A stretch of DNA of 37,104 nt. Source: Octopus sinensis. Taxonomy: Eukaryota. A program made the translations under genes and the position numbers. A model generated the notes under the pieces. That model worked only from the letters and a program-made list of their open reading frames with translations. It had not been told where the DNA came from and searched no databases. The stretch is taken from contig NW_021836825.1 in NCBI RefSeq assembly GCF_006345805.1, positions 1 to 37,104 of the forward strand. The letters are read 5' to 3'. Positions within the stretch are counted from its first letter, which is position 1, and the number at the start of each line of letters is the position of its first letter. Below, in pieces: positions 3,089 to 36,868 of the stretch.

Positions 3089-3259
3089 CTTTGTCTGGAT
3101 TACATGTTTTGCAGCAATGGGCCCTTTGTGCCTGATTAACACAAACTCCTGGAACCAATTCTAAAAGTTGTCTACAATTTGATGGTACAATCGTTTTGTC
3201 ACTGCCTGGAAATATCACCGTAAACCGAAGATTCTCATTATCTCCAAATGGACATTTCT
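3089..3259 (-). CDS. ADAMTS-like exon, 171 nt: KCPFGDNENLRFTVIFPGSDKTIVPSNCRQLLELVPGVCVNQAQRAHCCKTCNPDK (PLAC-like 6-Cys module)
   Basis: Acceptor ttttcccatcttttcAG and donor GTagga; phase 1 to phase 1; open frame with C..C..C..CC..C pattern. Confidence 0.9.
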
Positions 3260-3499
3260 CTGAAAAGATGGGAAAATGGAATGAATGAATAACAGGACGA
3301 ATGGGAAAATCTACAAGAATATGATGTTAGGTTCAATTCCACTTTACTGCTTCATTTATAGTATATTATCCTACAACCTCTCTTTAACCAATGCCTTGTG
3401 AGTGTAATTTGATGAATAGAAACTGTAAGGAAGTCTGTTTTATATGTATACATAATATATATAAACGATGAACACATTACACATATATCTATATATGTA

Positions 3500-3538
<39 letters not shown>

Positions 3539-3846
3539 TCATATATATACATACATACATACATAATACATACACATGGATTTTTAAGGTGTGACCTAAA
3601 ATGAAGATATGATTTTCTTGGTACATATTGGTCATTGTTAAATGCTCTGAATTTCATTATAATTCTGCATAAGGATTGTTGGATTTACCTGTCATACATG
3701 GGGATTTACCTGGGATTTGTATTCTACTTACATTTTCTGGTATCTACTTGTTCGACATTTAACCTTATTCTTCTATACTGAATGCTTACTTGATATCTGC
3801 CAGGATTTTTTAATCCCATGTTTTCTTTATATATATAATATATATA

Positions 3847-3895
<49 letters not shown>

Positions 3896-4223
3896 TCTTT
3901 CTTTTGCTTCAGTCATTTGAATGTGGCCATGCTGGAGCACTGCCTTTAGTTGAACAAATCAATCCAAGGACTTATTCTATCAGTGTCTTTTGCTGAACTG
4001 CTAAGTTACGGGGATGTAAACACACCAGCATTGGTTGTCAAGTGATGGTGGGGGGACAAACACAGACACACAAACATATGCATACATATATATATATGAT
4101 GGGCTTCTTTCAGTTTCTGTCTACCAATTCCACTCACAAAGCTTTGGTTGGCCTGAGGCTATAGTAGAAGACACTTGCAATGGGACTTAACCTGCCACCA
4201 TGTGGTTGGTAAGCAAGCTTCTT
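3896..4223 (-). mobile_element. tRNA-derived SINE family A, near full length
   Basis: Reverse complement aligns with the 26448-26815 copy (head, internal TA/CA tract, ccagcatggcc tail). Confidence 0.8.
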
Positions 4224-8489: not shown

Positions 8490-10865
8490 CAAAAAGTATG
8501 AAAAACTACATGTGCAAAACCATTTAACACCAGAAATGAATGGACCGGTACCCTATGAAAATGATGACCATCAAAATAAAGGGCCAGGCATTATTCCTCA
8601 TGTCCCACAAATAAAACCAAAAAAGAATAAACGGACATGTGAGGAATATATTTTAATCCTACATGCTTATTTTACAGCAGTGCTCCACCCACAGAATGAA
8701 AACACAACAACATATACAGATAAAATCTGGAAGAAAAATAACTTAGATAAAATTTGGGTACAGCAATGAATCATAATAAAGTAGCTAACAAAATAAAAAC
8801 AAGAACAAAAAAATACCAGAAATAGAAAATGAACACTTAAAAGGAAAAATACAACAGGAAAACGTAGATAGTAACCACACAGCAATAGCAAATAATATCA
8901 TAAGCACTGGGACTGTAAAATATGAAGACAGGTGTAACATGTCCAACAAAAATGAAGTAAACAACAAAAGACAACAAACCCAGATCATAAGAATGTATAA
9001 TGATGAGCAAAATGCACCAAGCCAGAACACCACAAACAAAAATATGAACAGGAGGGAATACGTACAAATCTAAAACATGGAAACAGCAAAGGTGAAACTA
9101 ATGATTATGATACTCTACAAATGAGTATAATCAAAGAATTGAAAGCCTCAGATCTCAATATGGGCCACCCAGAAATTAAAATTGATAATAAAACAACATC
9201 GATAATAAATAGCATGAACCTGGCTATCACAGAACTTATAGCCAGAGAAACAAATGTCAATATGACCAGGCTAAATGATATAATGTATGCAGTAACCTCT
9301 GTGACCAGAAAAGAAGCTGGTTACCTCCTAAAACCCACCCAAACAGGAGCATCACCACACAAACAAACTCTGTGGATATATAATATCCAGAAAAAATAGA
9401 AAATAAGAGAAAGGATCTGTCAATTCTTAATGAAACTAGTAGACAATCAACAGAAGAGAAGAAAAATCCAAGGCAACAAGAAGAGAAGAAAAATACTATG
9501 TAAATACAAAATTACAGAACAAGGTATATCTGAGGTAAAAGGACAGCTAAAGCAAGATATCCTCACCAAAGCACAAAGAATCCATCAGTATGAGAAACGC
9601 CAACATTTCTTTGAACAAAATGAACAGTTCAACTCTCATCCCAAAAGATTCTGCCAAGAACCTGGCAAAAATAAAATTGAGATCAATGCAGTACCAACAG
9701 CAGAAGTGGAAGAATTTTGGAAAGGAATATGGTTGGCGAAGGAACAACCACAGCAAAAATCTATCAAAACAATGAACATAGCACCTGAACAACAATTGAA
9801 GAGGTCAGCCAGGCACTGCAAAAACTAAGCAATGGGAAGGCACCCGGGCATGATAAGATCCCCAACTTCTGGTTAAAATACCTAACAGGAACATATAAAA
9901 CACTGGCTGAGAAATTTAATGTAATACTAGCAGAGCCAGAGTCAATGACTGAATGGCTCATGGAAGGGAAAACAATCCTAATTCCCAAATCCACTGAAAC
10001 AGCAAACCCATAAAATTATAGACCGATAACTTGTCTCCCTACACTTTACAAAGCCTTTACTGCAATAATATCGCAGAGAATGAGCAAACATCTGGAAGAA
10101 TATAACCTGTTTCCAGAAGAGCAGAAGGAATGCTGCAAGGGCTCATGTGGATGTAAAGAAGGGTCTAAGTATGGCCTGGTTTGATTACCAAAAGGTTTTT
10201 GGTAATATTCCCCACACATGGATCCTAGAAACACTAGCCATGAACAAGGTAGCACAAATAATCATAAGATATATAAAACATTCCATGAATAAATAGCAGT
10301 CAGTGCTACAGTTCCAGACAAAAAAGGGACTCATAAAAACCAAAGCCAATCCCTTTAGAAGAGGAATATTCCAGGGAGACATGCTCTCTCCACTCCTTTT
10401 CTGCTTGGCACTGACACCTTTATCTAACATGCTAAGCAGAAATGGATATGGATATAACTGTTATGACAAAATAATCAACCACCTGTTATATATGGATGAT
10501 CTAAAACTGTAAGCTACAAATGTTAAACAGCTGGAAACGTTACTCTAGACAACATGGATTTAACAAAGAAATAAGCATGAAATTTGGCTTAGAAAAATGT
10601 ACCAAAGCAACCTTGAAAAGAAGAAAACTAGTTAAGAGTAGCAACATCACACTAGATAAAGCAAATGAAATAAGAGAATTAGACCATAGCCAGGCATACA
10701 AATACTTAGGAATCAATGAACTAGATATAATACAACACACACAAATGAAAGAGAAGATAAGAAAAGAATACTATAGACGAGTTAGATTAATACTAAAAAC
10801 AGAGCTCAATGCAAAAAACAAGATAATAGCTGTCCCAGTTATAAGTTATAACTGGGTTCAAAATT
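8490..10865 (+). mobile_element. R4/Dong-like non-LTR retrotransposon, element A (N-terminus to RT, decayed, 3' part absent)
   Basis: N-terminal RTCEEYILILHAYF; GKAPGHDKIPNFW at about 9835-9870; NYRPITCLPT at about 10015; GIFQGDMLSPLLFCLAL...YMDDLKL (ORF 10303..10512); KFGLEKC...YKYLGI (10520..10867). Confidence 0.85.
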
Positions 10866-10869
10866 AACT

Positions 10870-12654
10870 AATCAAAATTATGGAATGTATGAATCTATTT
10901 GGTATTGCATCAAATGTTGAGCAATTGCTTGAAAAATGTATGACAAATTGGAGGATGGACCTGACAGCATTCAGAAGTTTAGGGACAGTAGAAATTAGGA
11001 AGGGCATCTTCCAAGGGGACTACCTGTCCCCACTAATCTTTGTACTGTGCTTGATACCACTGACACTGATTCTGAGGAAAGCAAAAGCTGGATATGTATT
11101 CAAAAGCCGCCAGTAAATAGTCAGCCCTTTGTTATTCATGGATGATCTGAAACTTTATGGTAAAGATGAAGCCCAAGTCAGTTCCTTCATTGATACAGTG
11201 TATACTTTCAGTGCTAATATCAGAATGAAATTTGGACTGAGAAAGTGTGGTGTATTAGTCTTGAAGAGAGGCAAAATCAAATGTATGGACAGGCTAACAG
11301 TACTGTCGGGAAGGTTATGAAGCAGATAGAAGAGATGGGCTATGAGTACTTGGGGATTTTGGAAATGGATACATTGATGGAGAAAGAAATGACAGAAAAA
11401 TTTAAGGTGGAGTACTTGCACAGTCTGAGACTGATCCATAAATCGATTGAAGCTATCAACCTAGTTTCACTCCTTAGATATGGAGCAAGAGTAATCGCAT
11501 GGACAGTAGATGAACTAAACAGCTTAGACAGAAAGACAAGGAAGTTGCTAACTAGGTATGGGACTCTCCACCCAAAAAGTAACACAGACAGACTATATGT
11601 ACCAAGAAAAAGAGGGGGAAGAGGACCTATTGGATGCGAACACAGCATTAAAGCAGAAGAAAACAACATAGCATGGTATGTAAAAAATGCTACAGAACTG
11701 TTATTATTAGAAGAATAATTGTGTAGGATGAAAGATTGCAATGATAAAGCAGTGTACAAGCAATTGAAAATGAATGAAACTGAAAATAGGTGGGTAAAGA
11801 AAAGAATGCATGGACAATTTCATAAGGATGTTAAAGATAAGACATACAGAGAAAAAAGATGGCTGTGGATGACTAAAAGTGATTTAAGACTGGAAACGGA
11901 GGCTCTAATCTGTGTTACCCGAGAGTAAGCACTAAGAACAAACTACATAAAATATAGAATAGACAACACACCAGAAAGTGATAAGTGCAGAATTTGTGGA
12001 CAAAATGGTGAAACCGTATGGCATATTACCTGCCAATGTACGCCACTAGCCCAGAAGGAATATAAGAGATGCCACAACAATATAGCAAAGCATGTCCATT
12101 GGACACATTGCAACAAGTATGGATTTGACAGAGAAAAAAATTTGGTATGACCACAAACCCGAAGGCATCATTGAAAATGATAATGCAAAGATCCTGTGGG
12201 ATTTTATGATTCAGTGCGACCATGAGATAGAGAATAGGAAGCCAGACATAGTCTTAATTGGGAAAGATACCAAACGATACTGGATCATAGTTATAGCGTG
12301 CCCAGCTGACAACAATATATGTGATAAGGAAGAAAGAAAAGTCAATAGATATGACAAGTTAGCTTGGGAGGTTAAGTAGTTGTTGCTGAGAAAGGTGGTA
12401 GTAGTACCAATAATTGTTGGAGCCCTGGGAACAGTGAGTAAAAACCTTGAGAAGTACATGGAACATATAGGGGCTGCAATAAGGGTGGAACACTTGTAGA
12501 AAACTGAACTGCTTGGGACCACTTGAATACTCCGGATGGTGCTTGAAAAATAAGGGGTGTTACCTTAGTTAGTTCAGTGGTAGTGAACAGCTGGCACTGT
12601 AGTACATCTGCAGTGTTAGAAGCTGTGTGAAGACTATAAATAATAATAATAATG

Positions 12655-15028: not shown

Positions 15029-15202
15029 TAAGTAGTTCTTCATTGAATAGGTATATATATATAGGTATATATATATGTTACTAAGGTATGTGTGTATATA
15101 TATGTATGAGTGTATATATATGTATGTGTGTGTATATATGTATGTGTGTGTATAAATGTATGTGTGTGTATATATGTAGTATATATATATGTATATATGT
15201 AG

Positions 15203-16729
15203 TCCTATTTATCATAGTCCTCCAGGCAATAACGGAGGAATTCAAGACAGGATGCCCTTGGGAGCTCCTCTATGCTGATCACCTTGCTCTAATTGCTGAG
15301 TCACTATCAGAACTGGAGGAGAAGTTTCAGGTGTGGAAACAAAGATTAGAATCGAAGGGCCTTAGAATCAACCTAGCCAAAACCAAAGTCCTAATAAGTA
15401 GGAAGGTAGACCAATCATAAACGACTTCAGGTAGATGGTCCTGCTCGATCTGTAAAAAAGGTGTAGGTAGAAACTCTATAAGGTGCACCAAGTGTAAGCT
15501 TTGGACACATAAGAGGTGCAGCAATGTCAAAGGAAGGCTAATTAGGAAAATAGTTTTTGTCTGTGGCAGATGCTCAGGAGCAATAAACACTGGAAATGTG
15601 CAGTGATCAACTTCTACCACGTTCCAGGGAGAAAAACTAGAAGTAGTTGATAGCTTCCGCTACCTAGGTGACCAAGTCAGTAGCTGGGGTGGGTGTGCTG
15701 AAAGTGTAACTGCTAGAGTAAGAATAACCTGGGCAAAGTTTAGAGAGCTCTTACCCCTGCTGGTGACAAAAGGCCTCTCGCTCAGAGTAAAAGGCAGACT
15801 GTATGATGCATGTGTATGTACAGCCATGCTACATGGTAGTGAAACATGGGCCGTGACTGCTGAGGATATGCGTAAGCTCACAAGAAATGAAGCCAGTATG
15901 CTCCGATGGATGTGTAATGTCAGTGTTCATAATTGACAGAGTGTAAGTACCTTGAGAGAAAAGTTGAACCTAAGAAACATCAGTTGTGGTGTGCAAGAGA
16001 GACGTTTGCGCTGGTATGGTCATGTGACGAGAATGGATGAAGATAGCTGTGTGCAAAAGTGCCACACCCTAGCAGTTGAGGGAACCTGTGGAAGAGGTAG
16101 ACCCAGGAAAACCTGGGACGAGGTGGTGAAGCACGACCTTCAAACTTTAGGTCGCACCAAGGAAATGACTAGAGACCAAGACCTATGGAAGTGTGCTGTG
16201 CGTGAGAAGACCCGACAAGACTAGTGAGACCATAACCCGTGGCCTCTACCTGGTATGTAGCCAGTCGACTTATACATACCTTTCCTTCTTGGGACACAAA
16301 ACTCCACTTGTGAAGACCCGTTGAGGCAAGTGAAAATCAAAAAATCAAAAAATCAAAATCAAATCAGATATCAGAAAGCAGAACCAAAATCGAAGTCGAT
16401 CAACATCAATGGAAATTGCGGCTGTGATACCAGTGCCGGTGACAAGTAAGCGAACCATCCGATTGTGACCGTTGCCAGCGCTGCCCCGACTGGCCTCTGT
16501 GCCGATGACACGTAAAAAGCACCATCCGTTCGTGGCCGTTGCCAGCCCCGCCTGGCCTCCGTGCCGGTGGAACATAAAAAGCACCATCTGTTCGTGGCCA
16601 TTGCCAGTGCCGCCCCGACTGGCCTCCGTGCCGGTAGCATGTAAAAGCACCATTCGTTCGTGGCCATTGCCAGCCTCACCTGGCCCCCGTGCCGGTGGCA
16701 CGTAAAAGCACCATCTGTTCATGGCCGTT
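15203..16729 (+). mobile_element. 5'-truncated RTE-clade LINE: RT C-terminal part to stop at 16224, then a 3'UTR with tandem repeats; interrupted at 16729
   Basis: LFIIVLQAITEEF...LLYADHLAL...KGLR.NLAKTKV; YLGD; HGSETW; RRLRWYGHV.RMD...GRGRPRKTW; few stops. Confidence 0.9.
16474..16729 (+). repeat. GC-rich tandem repeat in the RTE 3'UTR, units of 67/62/66/61 bp
   Basis: Units start at gccag 16474, 16541, 16603 and 16669. Confidence 0.85.
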
Positions 16730-17006
16730 TCAAAGATTTCACTGATATTATTCCAAGGGAATAAATGGTGTAAAACAATGTAATCTTCTCTTCAGGGAAG
16801 TGAAGAAATGAAACTCGTCAATAAGACATTTTAACAGAAAATGATGGATATGTATAGTGATTTACTGAACGCTATTAATATTGTTTGAAAAAAACGTTAT
16901 ACGATATAATGTCAGAAGTAGCCTATAGAAAGAGGAGGGATATTTTTTTAGTTAATGTTAAATATAAAAAGAAAATTAATGTTTAAATTATATATACTGA
17001 TAGAGA

Positions 17007-17579
17007 TTACTTATAGGAACTAAAGGTGTGTTTTTGCCAATGTTTACATCGATATGCACACTCTATAACTATGTTTACTAGGGGATTGTTAGAAAATATA
17101 ATGAAAAATAGTTCAGAATTACAGAGAAGATAGAATTCCTTGGCTTTGTCATAAGGTATTGAGATTGAGAGAATCAACCATTCTAAATTAAATTGTTCAT
17201 TGTGGTCTTTTAGATCCCAAATTAATTTACTGAGCCCAGTACTGTTACGTTTATTCCTATCCCTAAATGTTGAGTAATGGATAGAAATTCTTTTAGATAA
17301 CTCTAACGAGCTTCCAATGTAAAATCGTACTTTATTATGAGTACTGATTATACACTGGTATATAGAATTTTTTATTTTACAGTTACTTAACATAAACTTA
17401 ATTCTGTTGGAATTGACTTCAGATACAATAACCTTGTTATTAATATTTCTAGAAAGATGGATGGTATTAGCTAAATTAATGTTAGTATTAGTAAATGTAT
17501 TTATATTTAACAGGTTGTTATTATGTGAAGGGATAATTTGTAAGAGATTTTTTGTGTTGGAAAAACTAATCCTAACCAT
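17007..17579 (-). pseudogene. Penelope-like element C-terminal GIY-YIG endonuclease remnant (left-arm copy, 190-aa open frame)
   Basis: IIPSHN..LL...NSIYQC...FYIGSS...KRISIHYSTF...NSTGLSKLIWDLKD...LEWLIL...LLCNSE...CKH follows the PLE endonuclease pattern; no RT is present. Confidence 0.8.
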
Positions 17580-17701
17580 ATTTTTTCCGTGTTAATTGTT
17601 AACAAGGGGAAAATACACTCATCTATTTATATATATATATATATATAAGAAAGAAAGAAAGAAAGAAAAAGTGAAAAATGTGGTATCACTTTAGAATATA
17701 T

Positions 17702-18130
17702 AATTTATAATTCAATATAATTGCAGAGTTGTTAGATTAAGAAATAATGCATAGAGTCTCTCACAGTTGTTTCTAGACTAGCTGTGCATAGGGTGCATAA
17801 ATCATTGAGCAAAGATTTCCATATAAGCCAAACTGTCTTCAGAGAGGAAGAATCAAAGAATATTCTTAAAGGATATTAGTAGTTATCAGTTCTGTCATTA
17901 AAGAATTAATGAATATCCTTAGTAAAAGATAACAGTAGTTACCAATTCCATCATTGAATACTACTCGTTTTTTTACTAAGGATATTCTTTGATTCTTCAT
18001 AGTTGGCTTGTATGGAAATCTTTGCATAATGATTTATTACAGCATTTGCACAGCAATTCTAGAAACAGTATTATTTCTTAATCCCTTATTTACTCTAACA
18101 ACTCTGCAGTTACATTTGAATCATAAATTT
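17702..18130. mobile_element. Old MITE-like imperfect internal palindrome (left-arm copy)
   Basis: Self-complementary halves, e.g. tgcagagttgttaga/tctaacaactctgca and gaagaatcaaagaatat/atattctttgattcttc. Confidence 0.65.
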
Positions 18131-18210
18131 CATGCTCTAAAGTAACATCATATGTTTTGCTTGTTCTTTTTACCTTATCATCATCATCATCATTTAGCGT
18201 CCGTTTTCCA

Positions 18211-18413
18211 GCTCCGTCTGGCACCTGTGTGGGTGGCATGTAAAAAGCACCCACTACACTCGCGGAGTGGTTGGCGTTAGGAAGGGCATCCAGCCGTAGA
18301 AATACTGCCAGATCAGACTGGGTCTGATGCAGCCTTCTGGTTTCACAGACCCCAGTTGAACCGTCCAACCCATGCTAGCATGGAAAACGGACGCTAAATG
18401 ATGATGATGATGA
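18211..18413 (+). mobile_element. Resumed 3' end of the RTE LINE interrupted at 16729 (last repeat unit, conserved tail, (ATG)n)
   Basis: ccagctccgtctggcacctgtg...taaaaagcacc continues the 3'UTR repeat unit; the tail is homologous to 22193-22560 (reverse); ends in atgatgatga. Confidence 0.85.
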
Positions 18414-18460
18414 TAAGGTAAAAAGAACAAGCAAAACATATGATGTTACTTTAGAGCATG

Positions 18461-18886
18461 AAATTTATGATTCAAATGTAACTGCAGAGTTGTTAGAGTA
18501 AATAAGGGATTAAGAAATAATACTGTTTCTAGAATTGCTGTGCAAATGCTGTAATAAATCATTATGCAAAGATTTCCATACAAGCCAACTATGAAGAATC
18601 AAAGAATATCCTTAGTAAAAAAACGAGTAGTATTCAATGATGGAATTGGTAACTACTGTTATCTTTTACTAAGGATATTCATTAATTCTTTAATGACAGA
18701 ACTGATAACTACTATATCCTTTAAGAATATTCTTTGATTCTTCCTCTCTGAAGACAGTTTGGCTTATATGGAAATCTTTGCTCAATGATTTATGCACCCT
18801 ATGCACAGCTAGTCTAGAAACAACTGTGAGAGACTCTATGCATTATCTTAATCTAACAACTCTGCAATTATATTGAATTATAAATT
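18461..18886. mobile_element. Old MITE-like imperfect internal palindrome (right-arm copy)
   Basis: Mirror copy of 17702-18130. Confidence 0.65.
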
Positions 18887-18989
18887 ATATATTCTAAAGT
18901 GATACCACATTTTTCACTTTTTCTTTCTTCTTTCTTTCTTATATATATATATATATATAAATAGATGAGTGTATTTTCCCCTTGTTAAC

Positions 18990-19880
18990 AATTAACACGG
19001 AAAAAATATGGTTAGGATTAGTTTTTCCAACACAAAAAATCTCTTACAAATTATCCCTTCACATAATAACAACCTGTTAAATATAATACATTTACTAATA
19101 CTAACATTAATTTAGCTAATACCATCCATCTTTCTAGAAATATTAATAACAAGGTTATTGTATCTGAAGTCAATTCCAACAGAATTAAGTTTATGTTAAG
19201 TAACTGTAAAATAAAAAATTCTATATACCAGTGTATAATCAGTACTCATAATAAAGTACGATTTTACATTGGAAGCTCGTTAGAGTTATCTAAAAGAATT
19301 TCTATCCATTACTCAACATTTAGGGATAGGAATAACGTAACAGTACTGGGCTCAGTAAATTAATTTGGGATCTAAAAGACCACAATGAACAATTTAATTT
19401 AGAATGGTTGATTCTCTCAATCTCAATACCTTATGACAAAGCCAAGGAATTCTATCTTCTCTGTAATTCTGAACTATTTTTCATTATATTTTCTAACAAT
19501 CCCCTAGTAAACATAGTTATAGAGTGTGCATATCGATGTAAACATTGGCAAAAACACACCTTTATTTCCTATAAGTAATCTCTATCAGTATATATAATTT
19601 AAACATTAATTTTCTTTTTATATTTAACATTAACTAAAAAAAATATCCCTCCTCTTTCTATAGGCTACTTCTGACATTATATCGTATAACGTTTTTTTCA
19701 AACAATATTAATAGCGTTCAGTAAATCACTATACATATCCATCATTTTCTGTTAAAATGTCTTATTGACGAGTTTCATTTCTTCACTTCCCTGAAGAGAA
19801 GATTACATTGTTTTACACCATTTATTCCCTTGGAATAATATCAGTGAAATCTTTGAAACATGTGTTGGAAGTAAAAGTAT
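18990..19880 (+). mobile_element. 3' end of a Penelope-like element (GIY-YIG remnant, 3'UTR, hammerhead), right-arm copy
   Basis: Reverse complement of ORF 17007..17579 starting at ATG 19007, with 1-nt deletions near 19085 and 19333; followed by a hammerhead. Confidence 0.8.
19785..19872 (+). ncRNA. Type I hammerhead ribozyme, PLE-associated, with minimal stem III
   Basis: Stem I ACUUCC (19785-90) / GGAAGU (19867-72); core CUGAAGA (19791-97); stem II GAAGAUU/AAUCUUU extended by CAUUG/CAGUG; GAAA (19855-58); stem III ACA/UGU; cleavage triplet GUU (19864-66). Confidence 0.8.
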
Positions 19881-20009
19881 TTGAATTATACCTGCATTAA
19901 GCTCTATTTATTTATATATATATATGCAGGCAGAAATGTCGAGAAATTCAACAAAAGAATTAGTGACAGTGCAGGAGAATTCGAGGGCAGAATGGAAGGA
20001 TTGAACAGG

Positions 20010-21050
20010 AAGGAGTCAAGATGATATATCGTCAAGATCATCATCATCTATATATCATCTTGACTCTTTTCCTATCCAATCTTTTAATCCTGCCCTTGAA
20101 TTCTCCTGCACTGTCTCTAACTCTTCTGTTGAATTTCTCAACATTTCTGTCTGCATACACCACTCTGCTCTCAACACATCCATCTACTGCAAGCACACAG
20201 ACTCACACTTTTATCTTAATTTCTCCTCTTCTCACCCTACCCACACCAAGCTCTCGATTCCCTACCCCAAATTCCCTTGTCTATGCAAATTCTGCAGTGA
20301 CGACCATGACTTTGAGACCTAGTCTCAACTCATGGCTCACCACTTCACCCTATATGGATATCCCCCTCACCATTATCTACACTGCCCTTGTCTGGGCACA
20401 ATCTGTGGACTGTGCATCTACTCTTTCCCCTTGCACCTGCCCCACTCTTACCTGTCTGCTGTTTCCCCTAATCTACCACCACTCCAATGCACCATTCTCT
20501 GAGCCTTCTGGTGACTCTAGCCTAACTCCTCCACCTTGCACATCTTCCCTAAGTCACTCCTTCCTTCCTTCAAACAAGCCCAAAACCTGCATGACCTCCT
20601 GGTCCACAGTTTCTCCCCTACCCCTGTCTCTCAGCTTGTCTCCTTCCCTGCTCTTACCCACACTGTTGCATCTGCCCCTACCTCTCTAACACCACTATCC
20701 TCACTGGCACCCACTGCTGTCCCTATTACATCACTGACTCCTTTACCTGTACCTCCAGTAATGTTATTTACTGCATCTCCAACTCTCTCTCTGTCCTTCC
20801 CAGTACATTGGTCAAATGGGACGCTACTTGGCTGACTGTTTCATGGAGCACCTCCAAGACATCAGACTTGGCAATGACACCCTGGTCTCAGGCCACTTCT
20901 GCTCTACCTGTCAATCACTACATCTGTCTGTGTTTGGACTATCTCTGCACAGGGGCCACCTGGACTCTCACCTTTGCCGTGAACAGGAATTAAGCTTCTT
21001 CTTTTGTTCGTTATGGGCTCAACTTGCTTCCTCTCATCATCTGACATCAT
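20010..21050 (+). mobile_element. Decayed Penelope-like element fragment (RT thumb and GIY-YIG), a different family from the one in the palindrome
   Basis: Frame-hopping translation EFLNISV...SIYCKHTDSHFYLNFSSSHPTHTKLSIPY...CSDDHDF...GYP; FTCTSSNVIYCI; YIGQMGRYLADCFMEHLQDIR...VSGHF. Confidence 0.75.
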
Positions 21051-21499
21051 CCCACACACCTCCCACATTCAACTGCCCCTCCCCTTCACCTATACACCTG
21101 CATATCACCTACCTCAGTACCCTCACCACACACACCATTATGCAAACACCCATATTCACTGTTCAACTCATTACTCACTTCACATACCATTACACACACA
21201 TCTGCAAACACATTCCCACTTCACACACACTAGCACCAAACACTTTTCAGCACCCACACCACACACCATTATCCACACACTCTTCAATAGCGTCCCCACA
21301 CATACCACTATACAAGCACTCCTACACACTGTTCAACTTAGTACACACACCACACCATCATGCACACTCCCACACCCACACATAAACACATGCAACATGC
21401 ATAGACACAGATAACTTTTGCCCACAAGCATACACTATACACATGCACAACAATTTTATAAGACTGACAGAGGTAGTTGAGTTTAACTCAAGGAGTTAA

Positions 21500-21554
21500 G
21501 AGTTGCTGACAAGGATTAAGATGCTATGCATCAAAATCCAAAATCGTTTCATCT
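21500..21554 (+). ncRNA. Decayed (probably inactive) hammerhead ribozyme relic downstream of the second PLE
   Basis: CUGACAA (consensus CUGANGA); stem II GGAUU/AAUCC plus GAUGC/GCAUC; AAAA (consensus GAAA); stem I 4 of 5 bp. Confidence 0.5.
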
Positions 21555-22192
21555 AGGTAAGCTGGGGACTTACCTCCCTTTGCCAGTCATTCACTAAGTA
21601 AAGTGCTTTGTGGCTTTGGAGTTGTTTCTAGCTCTTGTTTCTAGTAATAGCTGGTGCTGGTCATTACCCTCTGTCACTTTTGTGACCTCTATTAATTTTG
21701 CCTATATGTGTGTGTATGTGTGTGTGTGTGCGTGTGTGTGTGTGTGTGTGTATGTGTGTGTGAGTGTATGTATATATGTAATATATCCAAGACATACATG
21801 CTACAATTCAAACGGAAATCAATTTGCCCTGAAGAAGTTTTTGCTTTCAACTTCATAAAGCAAATGTGCAAATTTGGATAGTGCAACAAACTGAAACGTC
21901 TCATAGGCAATATGACTATGATAATTAATTAATATATATATTGATTATCCTCTGTATGTATTCTCCATTTTTATTTATATTGTTAAAATTTTTTCTCCTA
22001 TACTGAAAATAATGGAAACCTCTATAGAGACAACTAGAATTTCAGAAGTCTAAGGTACTAATATCGAAGAAGAATGAATGATAAACTCTAGTACATATAC
22101 ACATATGCAACTTCCAATATCATTAATCAATATAGAGTGTATGCTGGTGTATGCTTGGATAGAACAACCTCTTTCCATACAAACACATATAT

Positions 22193-22560
22193 ATCATCAT
22201 CATCATCGTTTAATGTATGTTTTCCATGTTAGCATGGGCTGGACAGTTTGACTGAGGTCTAGAAAGCCAGTGGCTGCACCAGGCTCCAATCTGATCTGGC
22301 AATGTTTCTACAGCTGGATGCACTTCTTAACACCAACCACTCCGTGAGTATAGTAGGTGCTTTTTATGTGCCACTGGCATGGGAGCCAGTCAGGAGGCAC
22401 TGGCATTGGTCATGTTCGGATGGTGCTTTTTATGTGTCACAGGCACAGGAGACAGTCAGAAGGCCCTGGCAATGATCACATTTGGATAGTGCTTTATACA
22501 GGCCAGTCAGGGGGCATTGGCATCGACCACGTTTGGATGGTGTATTTTATGTGCTACCAT
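22193..22560 (-). mobile_element. 3' tail of the same RTE-type family (3'UTR repeats and (ATG)n tail)
   Basis: Reverse complement aligns with 18211-18413 and with the 16474-16729 repeat units. Confidence 0.75.
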
Positions 22561-22561
22561 A

Positions 22562-23578
22562 TAGCTTAGTTTTTCCTTGGGGCTGGCCAGATTGGAGCAA
22601 TCTCGAGTATAACCAGCCGAAATTGCAAAGATAATCTAGAACTCGACTGAGGATAGAAAACTTTGAATGACCCGTCCTTGTTTTCTTTGTATCTTCTGTC
22701 TGGATGTTTTGTTGTCTCTTTTTTGTATCACCTAACTGTCTGGATGTTTTGCATTCTTGTCCCACTTGTGTATTTTTTATATATAAAAAAAATATAGCAG
22801 CGTACATACACTTTGGTCTCTTATATGTAAGTATATATATATCTAAATTTTGTATGACTCTATTATTCTTTCTATTCTTTAATTCCTTCTTTCTATCAAC
22901 CCTTTCACGCTTACTTGTTCATTCCACTCTTTGTTCTTTTATTCCCCCTCTCTCACATTTCCTGACCTTCTCTTCATGCTAACTTTCCCTTCTCTCTTAC
23001 TTCACTGTATCCCTTTCATTTTTTTCTTGCCCCTCCTTAATTCTTCTATCTCTCTGCCTCTACATCTCTCTCCTCTCCCCACGTGACTGGTGTTTGGCCA
23101 AGCCTGACCTTTCTTTCTTGGTTCGACTCCCATCCGTGCAACATCTATATTCCTCCCTGTGTCTGTCTAATCCTATGTCCCTGCCATAAGGCTTTATTTT
23201 CACACACACCAGCTTAATTTAATTCATCCTTAGTCAAAAGACACATGTTATTATGTCCTGTTATTTGCATTTGTATTTGTGTAACATTCTCTGTTTTTTT
23301 TTCCGTGCTTGTTTTCATATACATTCGCTGCTTTCTTCCAAGGAATCTAATGCTCTTAGTTTAATTTTTCCTTGGGGTTGGCCAGATTGGAGCAATCTCG
23401 AGTATAACCAGCCAAAATTGCAAAGATAATCTGGAACTCGACTGAGGATAGAAAACTCTGAATGACCCATCCTTGTTTTTTTGTATCGTCTGTCTGGAAG
23501 TTTTGATGTCCCTTTTTTGTATCACCTAACTGTCTGGATGTTTTGTGTTCTTGTCCCATTTTTGTATTTTATATATAT
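22562..23578. mobile_element. Non-coding element with ~220-bp direct repeats (22562-22785 and 23357-23578) around a ~570-bp core
   Basis: The two copies align closely (ORFs 22547..22807 and 23356..23559 are near-identical); no TG...CA ends and no TSD seen. Confidence 0.7.
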
Positions 23579-23583
23579 ACATA

Positions 23584-33130: not shown

Positions 33131-33899
33131 CTGCAATAAAAATAAAAACCATTTTTTCAACGTTTTATATGGCATAAAATATATGCAATTGGAAAATGTT
33201 GATACATTAATTGATGTACAAAGGCCTAAAAAACTATGATGTATGGAGTATTAGAGTGAAAAACTAATGTAGAAAAACCTAAAAAAACTGTATTATATGC
33301 AGAATTGTATTTTATGATTTTACTTGTCATTGACTGTGGTTCAGCAGTTAGCAGTGGTTGTGGTTCAGTACCACTGTATGTCACCTAGGGCAAGTTTCTT
33401 CAACTATAGTTCCAAACCAATCAAAAATTTGTGAGTGCAGAAAAACTGAAAGCAGATTGTCATTTGTATTGTGTGTGTAAGTGTGACTTTAAACAGCATC
33501 CACTAGCAGGGTCCTAGTATGGGAATGCCAGAGCTTTGGGGTGTGTTGAACCACTTCTGAGCCATTATTGTTCCCAGGTCTACTCTGACCTGGAGTAGTA
33601 GCACTTGTTAGGATCCCAGATATGTGATAATTACTTTGTGAAGGACACCTACTTCTCATTAAAACTTCCCTCTAGAAGGTAAATCCCTATATATATATCT
33701 ATGTGTATATGTATACACATATATAAATACACATACATACATACATACATACATACATACATACATACATACATACATACATACATACAACATATATGAT
33801 CCTCATTTAGCATTCAGTTCCTATGCTTGTATGGGTAGGATGGTTTGGCAGGTATTGAAAGGCTAAAGTATGATAGAGGGACAGGTACATGTGTTTCTC

Positions 33900-36445: not shown

Positions 36446-36781
36446 AAATATATATTAATATATATAATATATATTATTATATATATATGTATAATATATA
36501 TATGTATATATATATATGTATATTATAATATATATGATATGTATAGATATATGTATATATATATATGTATATATATATATGTATATGTATATATGTATAT
36601 GTCTATATATATATATATAATATATTTATAATTATATATATATATATATAATATATATATATAATATGTATATATATATATATGTATATATATATAACTA
36701 TAAATAGCAATAATAATTCTCTAAACGAGTATATATAATATATATATATATATATAGAAATATATATAGATATATCTATAA

Positions 36782-36820
<39 letters not shown>

Positions 36821-36868
36821 CATATATATAATATATATATATATGATTGATTGATTGATTGATTGATT
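36446..36868. repeat. About 400-bp (TA)n-rich low-complexity tract followed by (GATT)n
   Basis: Seen directly. Confidence 0.95.

Follow-up and report, generated by a model that had tools for sequence, protein, structure and literature searches.

The DNA analyzed here, referred to as the window, is a 37,104-nt stretch of the Octopus sinensis genome (contig NW_021836825.1, forward strand) in which a block of DNA is present twice, in opposite orientations, around a short spacer. The block includes the 3' part of a Penelope-like element (PLE), and one of its ends falls within the hammerhead ribozyme of that element. This inverted duplication is real and very recent, and it was probably generated by a microhomology-mediated DNA template switch or foldback. 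In kind, it is a new example of a known rearrangement class, found beside a probable new member of a known retroelement clade. The initial annotation of this DNA had preferred an origin in which self-cleavage of the hammerhead defined the end of an RNA that was reverse transcribed back into the same locus, and had named DNA template switching as the alternative; the alternative is the one that we now favor.

The inverted duplication and its empty site

The left arm (16727 to 18210, minus strand) and the right arm (18381 to 19859, plus strand) are separated by a spacer of 170 nt (18211 to 18380, plus strand). A global alignment of the two arms, one of them inverted, gave an identity of 99.46% over 1485 columns, which confirmed the palindrome reported in the initial annotation. 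The arms differ by a single substitution (17020/19565) and by six indels of 1 to 2 nt, which are located in short A/T runs; the right arm is the shorter one at five of these six. The right arm, the source copy, consists of the tail of a long interspersed nuclear element (LINE; 18381 to 18415), a foldback repeat (18422 to 18926), an (AAAG)n/(AT)n microsatellite, and the PLE remnant, which is a retroelement 3' part and starts at about 18965. About 600 nt of each arm are non-PLE sequence. The copied block as a whole had been described as non-PLE, a description that did not hold for the outer ~900 nt of each arm, which are Penelope-like and contain an endonuclease open reading frame (ORF), a 3' untranslated region (UTR), and a hammerhead. 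We also observed that each arm holds an imperfect palindrome of about 505 nt (17662 to 18169, equivalent to 18422 to 18926) that is 70% self-complementary and possibly of the foldback type or similar to a miniature inverted-repeat transposable element.

The duplication lies in the 3' region of a LINE. Degenerate ORF pieces in the same frame (15085 to 16221, plus strand) correspond to the C-terminal part of a LINE reverse transcriptase (RT), with a match to Pfam RVT_1 (E = 2.2e-6) that spans only positions 128 to 193 of the 205 in the profile. This LINE is the element that had been called RTE in the initial annotation, and the clade label RTE was not carried over. Because the RT piece is directly preceded on its 5' side by a microsatellite (15086 to 15194), the LINE is 5' truncated and therefore without a promoter of its own. 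Its 3' UTR contains a tandem array of 62- to 67-nt units (16433 to 16729, plus strand; period of 62 and 4.6 copies according to TRF), which ends with ...GGCCGTT and is the target of the insertion. The spacer is the body of the same 3' UTR and was ancestrally contiguous with the array. A second copy of this LINE/SINE (short interspersed nuclear element) 3' end at 22185 to 22640 (minus strand), made of array, body, and (ATG)n tail, served as a yardstick for the empty site. In this copy, the array runs directly into the body and the (ATG)n tail. When positions 16560 to 16729 were joined to 18207 to 18420, the product and the second copy were colinear, which identifies the left arm as an insertion and as the derived copy, in agreement with the initial annotation.

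The insertion site can be written as ...GGCCGTT-G-CCAGCTCCG..., and the reconstructed empty allele, with the left arm absent, as GGCCGTTGCCAGCTCCG. Two microhomologies of 3 nt, already proposed from the sequence, were confirmed by the same colinearity: GTT (16727 to 16729) at one junction and CCA (18208 to 18210) at the other are common to the target and the insert. One G was lost at the insertion, without any target-site duplication. The repeat that served as the target is GC rich (GGCCGTT|GCCAGC) and is not (TA)n. The last 35 nt of the LINE tail (18381 to 18415) are found in both arms, and the duplication is therefore younger than the LINE. The ancestral locus was a 5'-truncated LINE ending with array, body, and (ATG)n tail, followed by the old foldback repeat and then by the 3' part of the PLE. 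That PLE part, from a 5'-truncated, probably Hydra-type element, comprised the endonuclease ORF, the 3' UTR, the hammerhead, a short extension, and (TA)n.

The right arm ends on its outer side at C19859, the last base of a GAAAC box inside the PLE hammerhead (hammerhead A), 7 nt 5' of the predicted cleavage site after U19866, exactly where the initial annotation had put it. Three AAC sites are present between 19700 and 20000 and 43 between 18384 and 20500; the GAAAC box, which is conserved in hammerheads, supplies one of them. The inner breakpoint (18380|18381) lies three bases into a 14-nt perfect palindrome, CCATGCTAGCATGG (18370 to 18383), which is one of about four perfect palindromes of at least 14 nt in the 37 kb that are not made of A and T only. 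At the target, positions 16716 to 16733 can form a small stem-loop (TGGC-CGTT-GCCA), with the break between the loop and the 3' stem. With this stem-loop, all three switch points would sit at short self-complementary motifs.

The Penelope-like remnant and its hammerhead

The outer ~900 nt of the arms are, by their sequence, the 3' part of a PLE that is of the Hydra type according to motifs in its relatives. In the left arm only, the endonuclease ORF (17007 to 17591, minus strand) is open over 194 codons, in a region of 28% G+C. Its match to the Pfam GIY-YIG profile (E = 0.0011, 19.7 bits) is below the cutoff of 22.6. The equivalent ORF of the right arm (18996 to 19579, plus strand) is frameshifted at 19086 and 19335. 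At 19335, the frame of the left arm is ancestral, because the YIG...H and T.LSK.IW.LK blocks share one frame, as they do in the relatives. It is thus the derived arm that keeps the ORF open and the source arm that is frameshifted twice, which could reflect a polishing error, mixed-in allelic sequence, or real decay. No RT was found upstream of the endonuclease ORF in either arm, and this PLE copy is 5' truncated.

An exhaustive HMMER search returned 1506 relatives of the endonuclease ORF, most of them short fragments. Three long relatives (P0023, P0129, and P0052) have the GIY-YIG domain at the C terminus, after an RT-like region. Elements of the Hydra clade are characterized by DKT, a CxCX5C linker, CxxC...CxH, and the lack of the CCHH motif (Craig et al., PMC8557442). 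By eye, DKT and YRDDGL could be read in P0023 and P0129, and the CxCX5C linker together with CxxC...CxH in P0129 and P0008, by comparison with PMC8557442. Pfam found no domain in the nine relatives scanned, a set that did not include P0008, and the assignment to the Hydra clade therefore comes from these by-eye motifs. Hydra-clade PLEs are short, insert at (TA)n, and always have a hammerhead (PMC8557442). The remnant resembles them in its hammerhead near the 3' end, its insertion at (TA)n, and its 5' truncation, as well as in the C-terminal GIY-YIG domain of its relatives; unlike them, it has lost its RT, is frameshifted in the right arm, and has an unusually long helix II (7+5+7 bp) in its hammerhead. 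Hammerhead A begins 206 nt past the stop of the endonuclease ORF. Beyond it, the element continues with a 3' extension (19873 to 19909, plus strand) that is absent from the left arm and homologous to sequences in four other family copies (L001, L003, L013, and L015), and it ends at about 19905 to 19909, adjoining (TA)n at about 19910 to 19922.

Hammerhead A (19785 to 19872, plus strand) is, by sequence and covariation, a genuine PLE hammerhead of type I, as had been claimed. It is formed by helix I (19785 to 19790/19867 to 19872), CUGAAGA (19791 to 19797), helix II (19798 to 19804/19848 to 19854), GAAA (19855 to 19858), and a short helix III, ACAUGUGU, which is self-complementary when G-U pairs are allowed. 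All the core nucleotides of a type I hammerhead are present: CUGAAGA, GAAA, U19865, and U19866, the last at H17, which is thus not G. Rfam Hammerhead_1 aligned end to end with 19785 to 19872 at 18.0 bits, compared with a gathering score of 34. The corresponding E value was 0.059 in a search of 181 nt, on both strands, against 4227 families, or about 1.4e-5 for Hammerhead_1 alone. This match was visible only in the 181-nt search, and an E-value search of 8 kb missed it because of filters; at the gathering threshold, Rfam had no match in the whole window. We also made a descriptor of our own (CUGANGA, helix II of at least 4 bp, GAAA, A15.1/U16.1, H17, and helix I of at least 5 bp). It matched the window exactly twice, both times on the plus strand, at hammerhead A and at hammerhead B (see below), while 0.0033 matches per window were expected according to 300 Markov-1 random windows.

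Further support came from an alignment of five family copies. Compensatory change altered eight pairs on both sides, versus one to five in slid controls, and the covariation score was 0.252, versus at most 0.128 in slid controls; none of 500 shuffles reached 0.252. The centroid fold contained helix I and the 7+5+7-bp helix II; a stable helix III was absent from it. Folding energy by itself does not single out hammerhead A (z = -1.4). The full core, the 6-bp helix I, and the short self-complementary helix III are as in type I hammerheads (RF00163) and minimal PLE hammerheads (PMC4209133), and a long helix II is found in the PLE motifs of Schistosoma (PMC4209133). In contrast to RF00163 and the hammerheads in PMC4209133, hammerhead A has a 43-nt insertion in helix II, a G10.1-U11.1 pair, U17, and an Rfam score well below the threshold. 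The G10.1-U11.1 pair occurs in three of the five copies, the window copy included, and U17 in the window copy. The short self-complementary helix III implies action as a dimer, an architecture that is that of PLE hammerheads (PMC4209133). With such a helix III, U17, and G10.1-U11.1, a lone hammerhead A would be expected to cleave poorly.

Next, the 3' ends of the family bear on how its RNA is copied. The sample consisted of the window copy and of L001, L003, L013, and L015, taken from public short-read assemblies; five copies are a small sample. Each of the latter four has the endonuclease ORF followed by the same hammerhead motif, although the core has decayed in some (GAGA in L001 and CUGGCGA in L015). 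Rfam missed the hammerheads of L003, L013, and L015. In all five copies, homology spans the whole hammerhead and 35 to 70 nt beyond the cleavage site, and the microsatellite at which a copy ends differs from copy to copy, being (TA)n, (TG)n, (TATC)n, (TACA)n, or rich in TA. None of the five ends at the position of 19859, an outcome that the initial annotation had listed among those that would refute its model. Therefore, the RNA is normally copied without being cut at the hammerhead, and copying normally starts downstream of it. This agrees with the one PLE that has been studied in vitro, whose RT initiates on uncleaved RNA at an internal site downstream of the hammerhead (PMC11167929). In that element, ribozyme mutants insert normally, cleavage requires the PLE protein, and RNA ends do not map to the cleavage site (PMC11167929). 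The sequences L008 to L012 stop short of any hammerhead. A metagenome scan with the hammerhead pattern gave a single match, at about chance level by a rough estimate, at 3245 to 3320 of L002 (contig Ga0194135_10005141). It reads CCCTGAAGAGA...GGAATAATATCA, then GAGAGTGTGTCGAAAG, with no endonuclease ORF nearby; in this eukaryote-like DNA, it represents a relic or a match by chance.

Origin of the left arm

In the mechanism that we favor, a growing plus strand (a leading strand that had stalled, or a broken end) would stop in the GC-rich array at ...GGCCGTT. The GTT at the 3' end of this strand would find its partner about 1.65 kb ahead, in the AAC of the GAAAC box (19857 to 19859) on the plus strand, which would then be copied backwards over 1.48 kb, to 18381. 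Three bases into the inner palindrome, copying would stall, and the new strand would rejoin its own template via CCA. A mirror version leads to the same product: after one double-strand break, the resected right end would fold back with the 170-nt spacer as the loop and be extended, and the left end would capture it. The hammerhead would be a bystander that happens to contain an AAC site, of which this AT-rich stretch offers few.

Several features favor such a switch. The copy and its source are 170 bp apart; a local DNA template switch produces such proximity by default, while retrotransposition would need an undocumented tether. A stall at a structure, not a free choice of microhomology, is suggested at the inner end because seven TGG sites in the spacer, all nearer than the junction used, were left unused and because the breakpoint falls in a rare palindrome. 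At the outer end, the local rarity of AAC sites makes the GAAAC box a likely landing point on composition alone. Inverted orientation of an adjacent copy, a single-copy spacer that corresponds to a loop, short microhomology, the lack of a target-site duplication, and locality are all shared with template switching by fork stalling (FoSTeS) or microhomology-mediated break-induced replication (MMBIR) and with foldback (PMC11724301; PMC3907307). At double-strand breaks in yeast, the same topology results when an end folds back with a 41-nt loop, is extended by synthesis, and is captured with 0 to 5 bp of microhomology (PMC11724301), and human inverted duplications with spacers are reported to arise by fold-back (PMC3907307). 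The large human cases are terminal duplications with a deletion, whereas the duplication here is an interstitial insertion that returns to its original template.

Other observations weigh against this origin. The outer breakpoint is within 7 nt of the cleavage site of a real hammerhead, in the 3'-terminal module of a retroelement whose enzymes act there. If all AAC sites within 2 kb are taken as equally likely, the estimated chance of a breakpoint so near the cleavage site is about 2% (1 of 43), before allowing for the choice of landmark. With the 3' end of the element fixed and its 5' end variable, the polarity matches target-primed reverse transcription, as the initial annotation had pointed out for the geometry. 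The 1.48-kb tract far exceeds the 2 to 150 bp of yeast foldback insertions (PMC11724301), and a microhomology of 3 nt is minimal. Moreover, one sequence alone cannot tell a DNA template from an RNA template, since both reproduce it.

An involvement of the PLE machinery without ribozyme cleavage is unlikely, although it survives best among the other explanations. Either RT would have started at a "tail-less" site near 19859 on uncleaved RNA, or a DNA nick made by the endonuclease in the 3' region would have seeded the rearrangement. PLE copies often carry a one-ended "tail" of 30 to 40 bp, matching two RT start sites (PMC8557442, PMC11167929), and the right arm has about 46 to 50 nt that the left arm lacks; however, this exceeds the published tail length, none of the five family copies is tail-less, and both start sites of the PLE studied in vitro are downstream of the hammerhead (PMC11167929). 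PLE endonucleases recognize and cut their own terminal region (PMC11167929), and the insertion of a second, probable PLE into the same (TA)n, about 60 nt downstream, suggests that the spot had been hit before. Against this, the left arm did not enter a (TA)n target, and for the RNA version the problem of locality persists. An endonuclease nick and hammerhead cleavage predict the same enrichment of breakpoints across the genome, so that a survey alone would not separate them.

It is likewise unlikely that the left arm was reverse transcribed from a local plus-strand RNA that remained tethered and whose usable 3' end was set by the 3' module of the PLE, through hammerhead cleavage or a nearby internal RT start. 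The tether might be, for example, an R-loop over the LINE 3' UTR; a nick 1.65 kb upstream would prime synthesis, which would stop where the RNA re-enters the hybrid. RNA-templated variants in general are possible with a low probability.

That the palindrome is an artifact of assembly or library preparation, caused by template switching of a polymerase in vitro or by a chimeric long read used as a backbone, is quite improbable. Six homopolymer indels against one substitution look more like the errors of unpolished long reads than like evolution, PLEs with complex structures are a known difficulty for assemblies (PMC8557442), and none of three window ORFs had an exact match in public assemblies, leaving the junctions without an independent assembly. 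However, the usual product of read artifacts is a complete fold-back (A-B-B'-A'), whereas the window contains an inverted insert that is followed by a return to the original sequence and bounded by two microhomology junctions. In addition, the ORF is in frame in the left arm and frameshifted in the right, so that the arms are more than duplicate readings of a single molecule.

The ribozyme-defined retro-duplication is very unlikely. A plus-strand transcript would cleave itself after U19866, a nicked ...GGCCGTT-3'OH would pair with the AAC 7 nt from the end of the RNA, RT would extend it to 18381, and the cDNA would be joined through CCA. Hammerhead A is real and PLE derived, and the geometry and polarity fit. 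PLE RT also starts internally on its RNA, with both target strands extendable (PMC11167929), and both the formation of inverted copies and the mobilization in trans of other RNAs have been reported for PLEs (PMC8557442). Nevertheless, the ordinary copies of the family, five out of five, run past the site, and the in vitro results described above uncouple insertion from cleavage. The poor cleavage expected of a lone hammerhead A, a PLE copy without RT, a LINE without its 5' end or promoter, the GC-rich target, and the rarity of AAC sites also speak against it, as does the landing 170 bp from the source, which requires an extra tethering step.

Twin priming and one-event PLE or LINE insertion were rejected, because they predict target DNA outside the pair or direct duplications and the LINE 3' UTR continues through the spacer. 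As in the complex insertions of PLEs (PMC8557442; PMC11167929), two copies are head to head with the element 3' ends outward and one end extended; in contrast to them, target DNA (the body of the LINE 3' UTR) lies between the arms and each arm holds ~600 nt of non-PLE sequence, so that the pair cannot be a single PLE insertion event.

A second probable element, other features, and implications

A second, 5'-truncated PLE is probable at 19923 to 21920 (plus strand), as judged from RT-thumb-like and frameshifted GIY-YIG-like motifs read by eye, a weak BLASTP match to P0129 (E = 0.006), and hammerhead B. Hammerhead B (21824 to 21910, plus strand) matches our descriptor, with CUGAAGA at 21829, GAAA at 21893, H17 at 21905, a helix I of 5 bp, and a helix II of 5+4 bp. 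Its spacing from C3 to G12 is 64 nt, equal to that of hammerhead A; Rfam does not detect it. A six-frame Pfam search of 19860 to 23400 found neither RT nor GIY-YIG, and a homologue search and hhalign gave nothing significant for the second element, which for this reason stays probable. At its 5' end, an inverted pair of 89 nt (19923 to 20011 and 20069 to 20157) with a 57-nt spacer is 87% complementary. The right arm of this pair encodes part of the RT thumb, and the pair therefore has the appearance of a snap-back at the truncated 5' end of an insertion. The region from 19923 to 20157 also draws subthreshold matches to plant microRNAs in Rfam.

Elsewhere in the window, a degenerate LINE with many stops and frameshifts was found at about 8800 to 12400 (plus strand), with a Pfam RVT_1 match (E = 3e-7) just above the cutoff. 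A direct repeat of 224 nt with 92% identity (22562 to 22785 and 23357 to 23579) has its copies about 800 nt apart. A stop-free region at about 22677 to 22790 (plus strand) gave a weak Pfam match to a LITAF-like zinc ribbon (E = 0.00066, 20.2 bits; cutoff, 23.8). About 400 nt at 36448 to 36855 are AT rich, highly self-complementary, and microsatellite-like, with related blocks at 3440 to 3900, 15047 to 15200, and 33680 to 33800.

If the left arm was copied from RNA, local palindromes would have a source in retroelement ribozymes, and self-cleaving RNA would be linked to genome structure in a new way, a conclusion for which one locus is insufficient. If it arose by a DNA template switch or foldback, the locus would offer a clean, nearly undiverged inverted duplication of kilobase scale in which both junctions and the empty site can be read, and it would show small palindromes and rare microhomology sites steering template switches. 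The analysis also documents a probably Hydra-type PLE family with a covarying, long-helix-II hammerhead in the Octopus sinensis genome and in a set of public sequencing runs.

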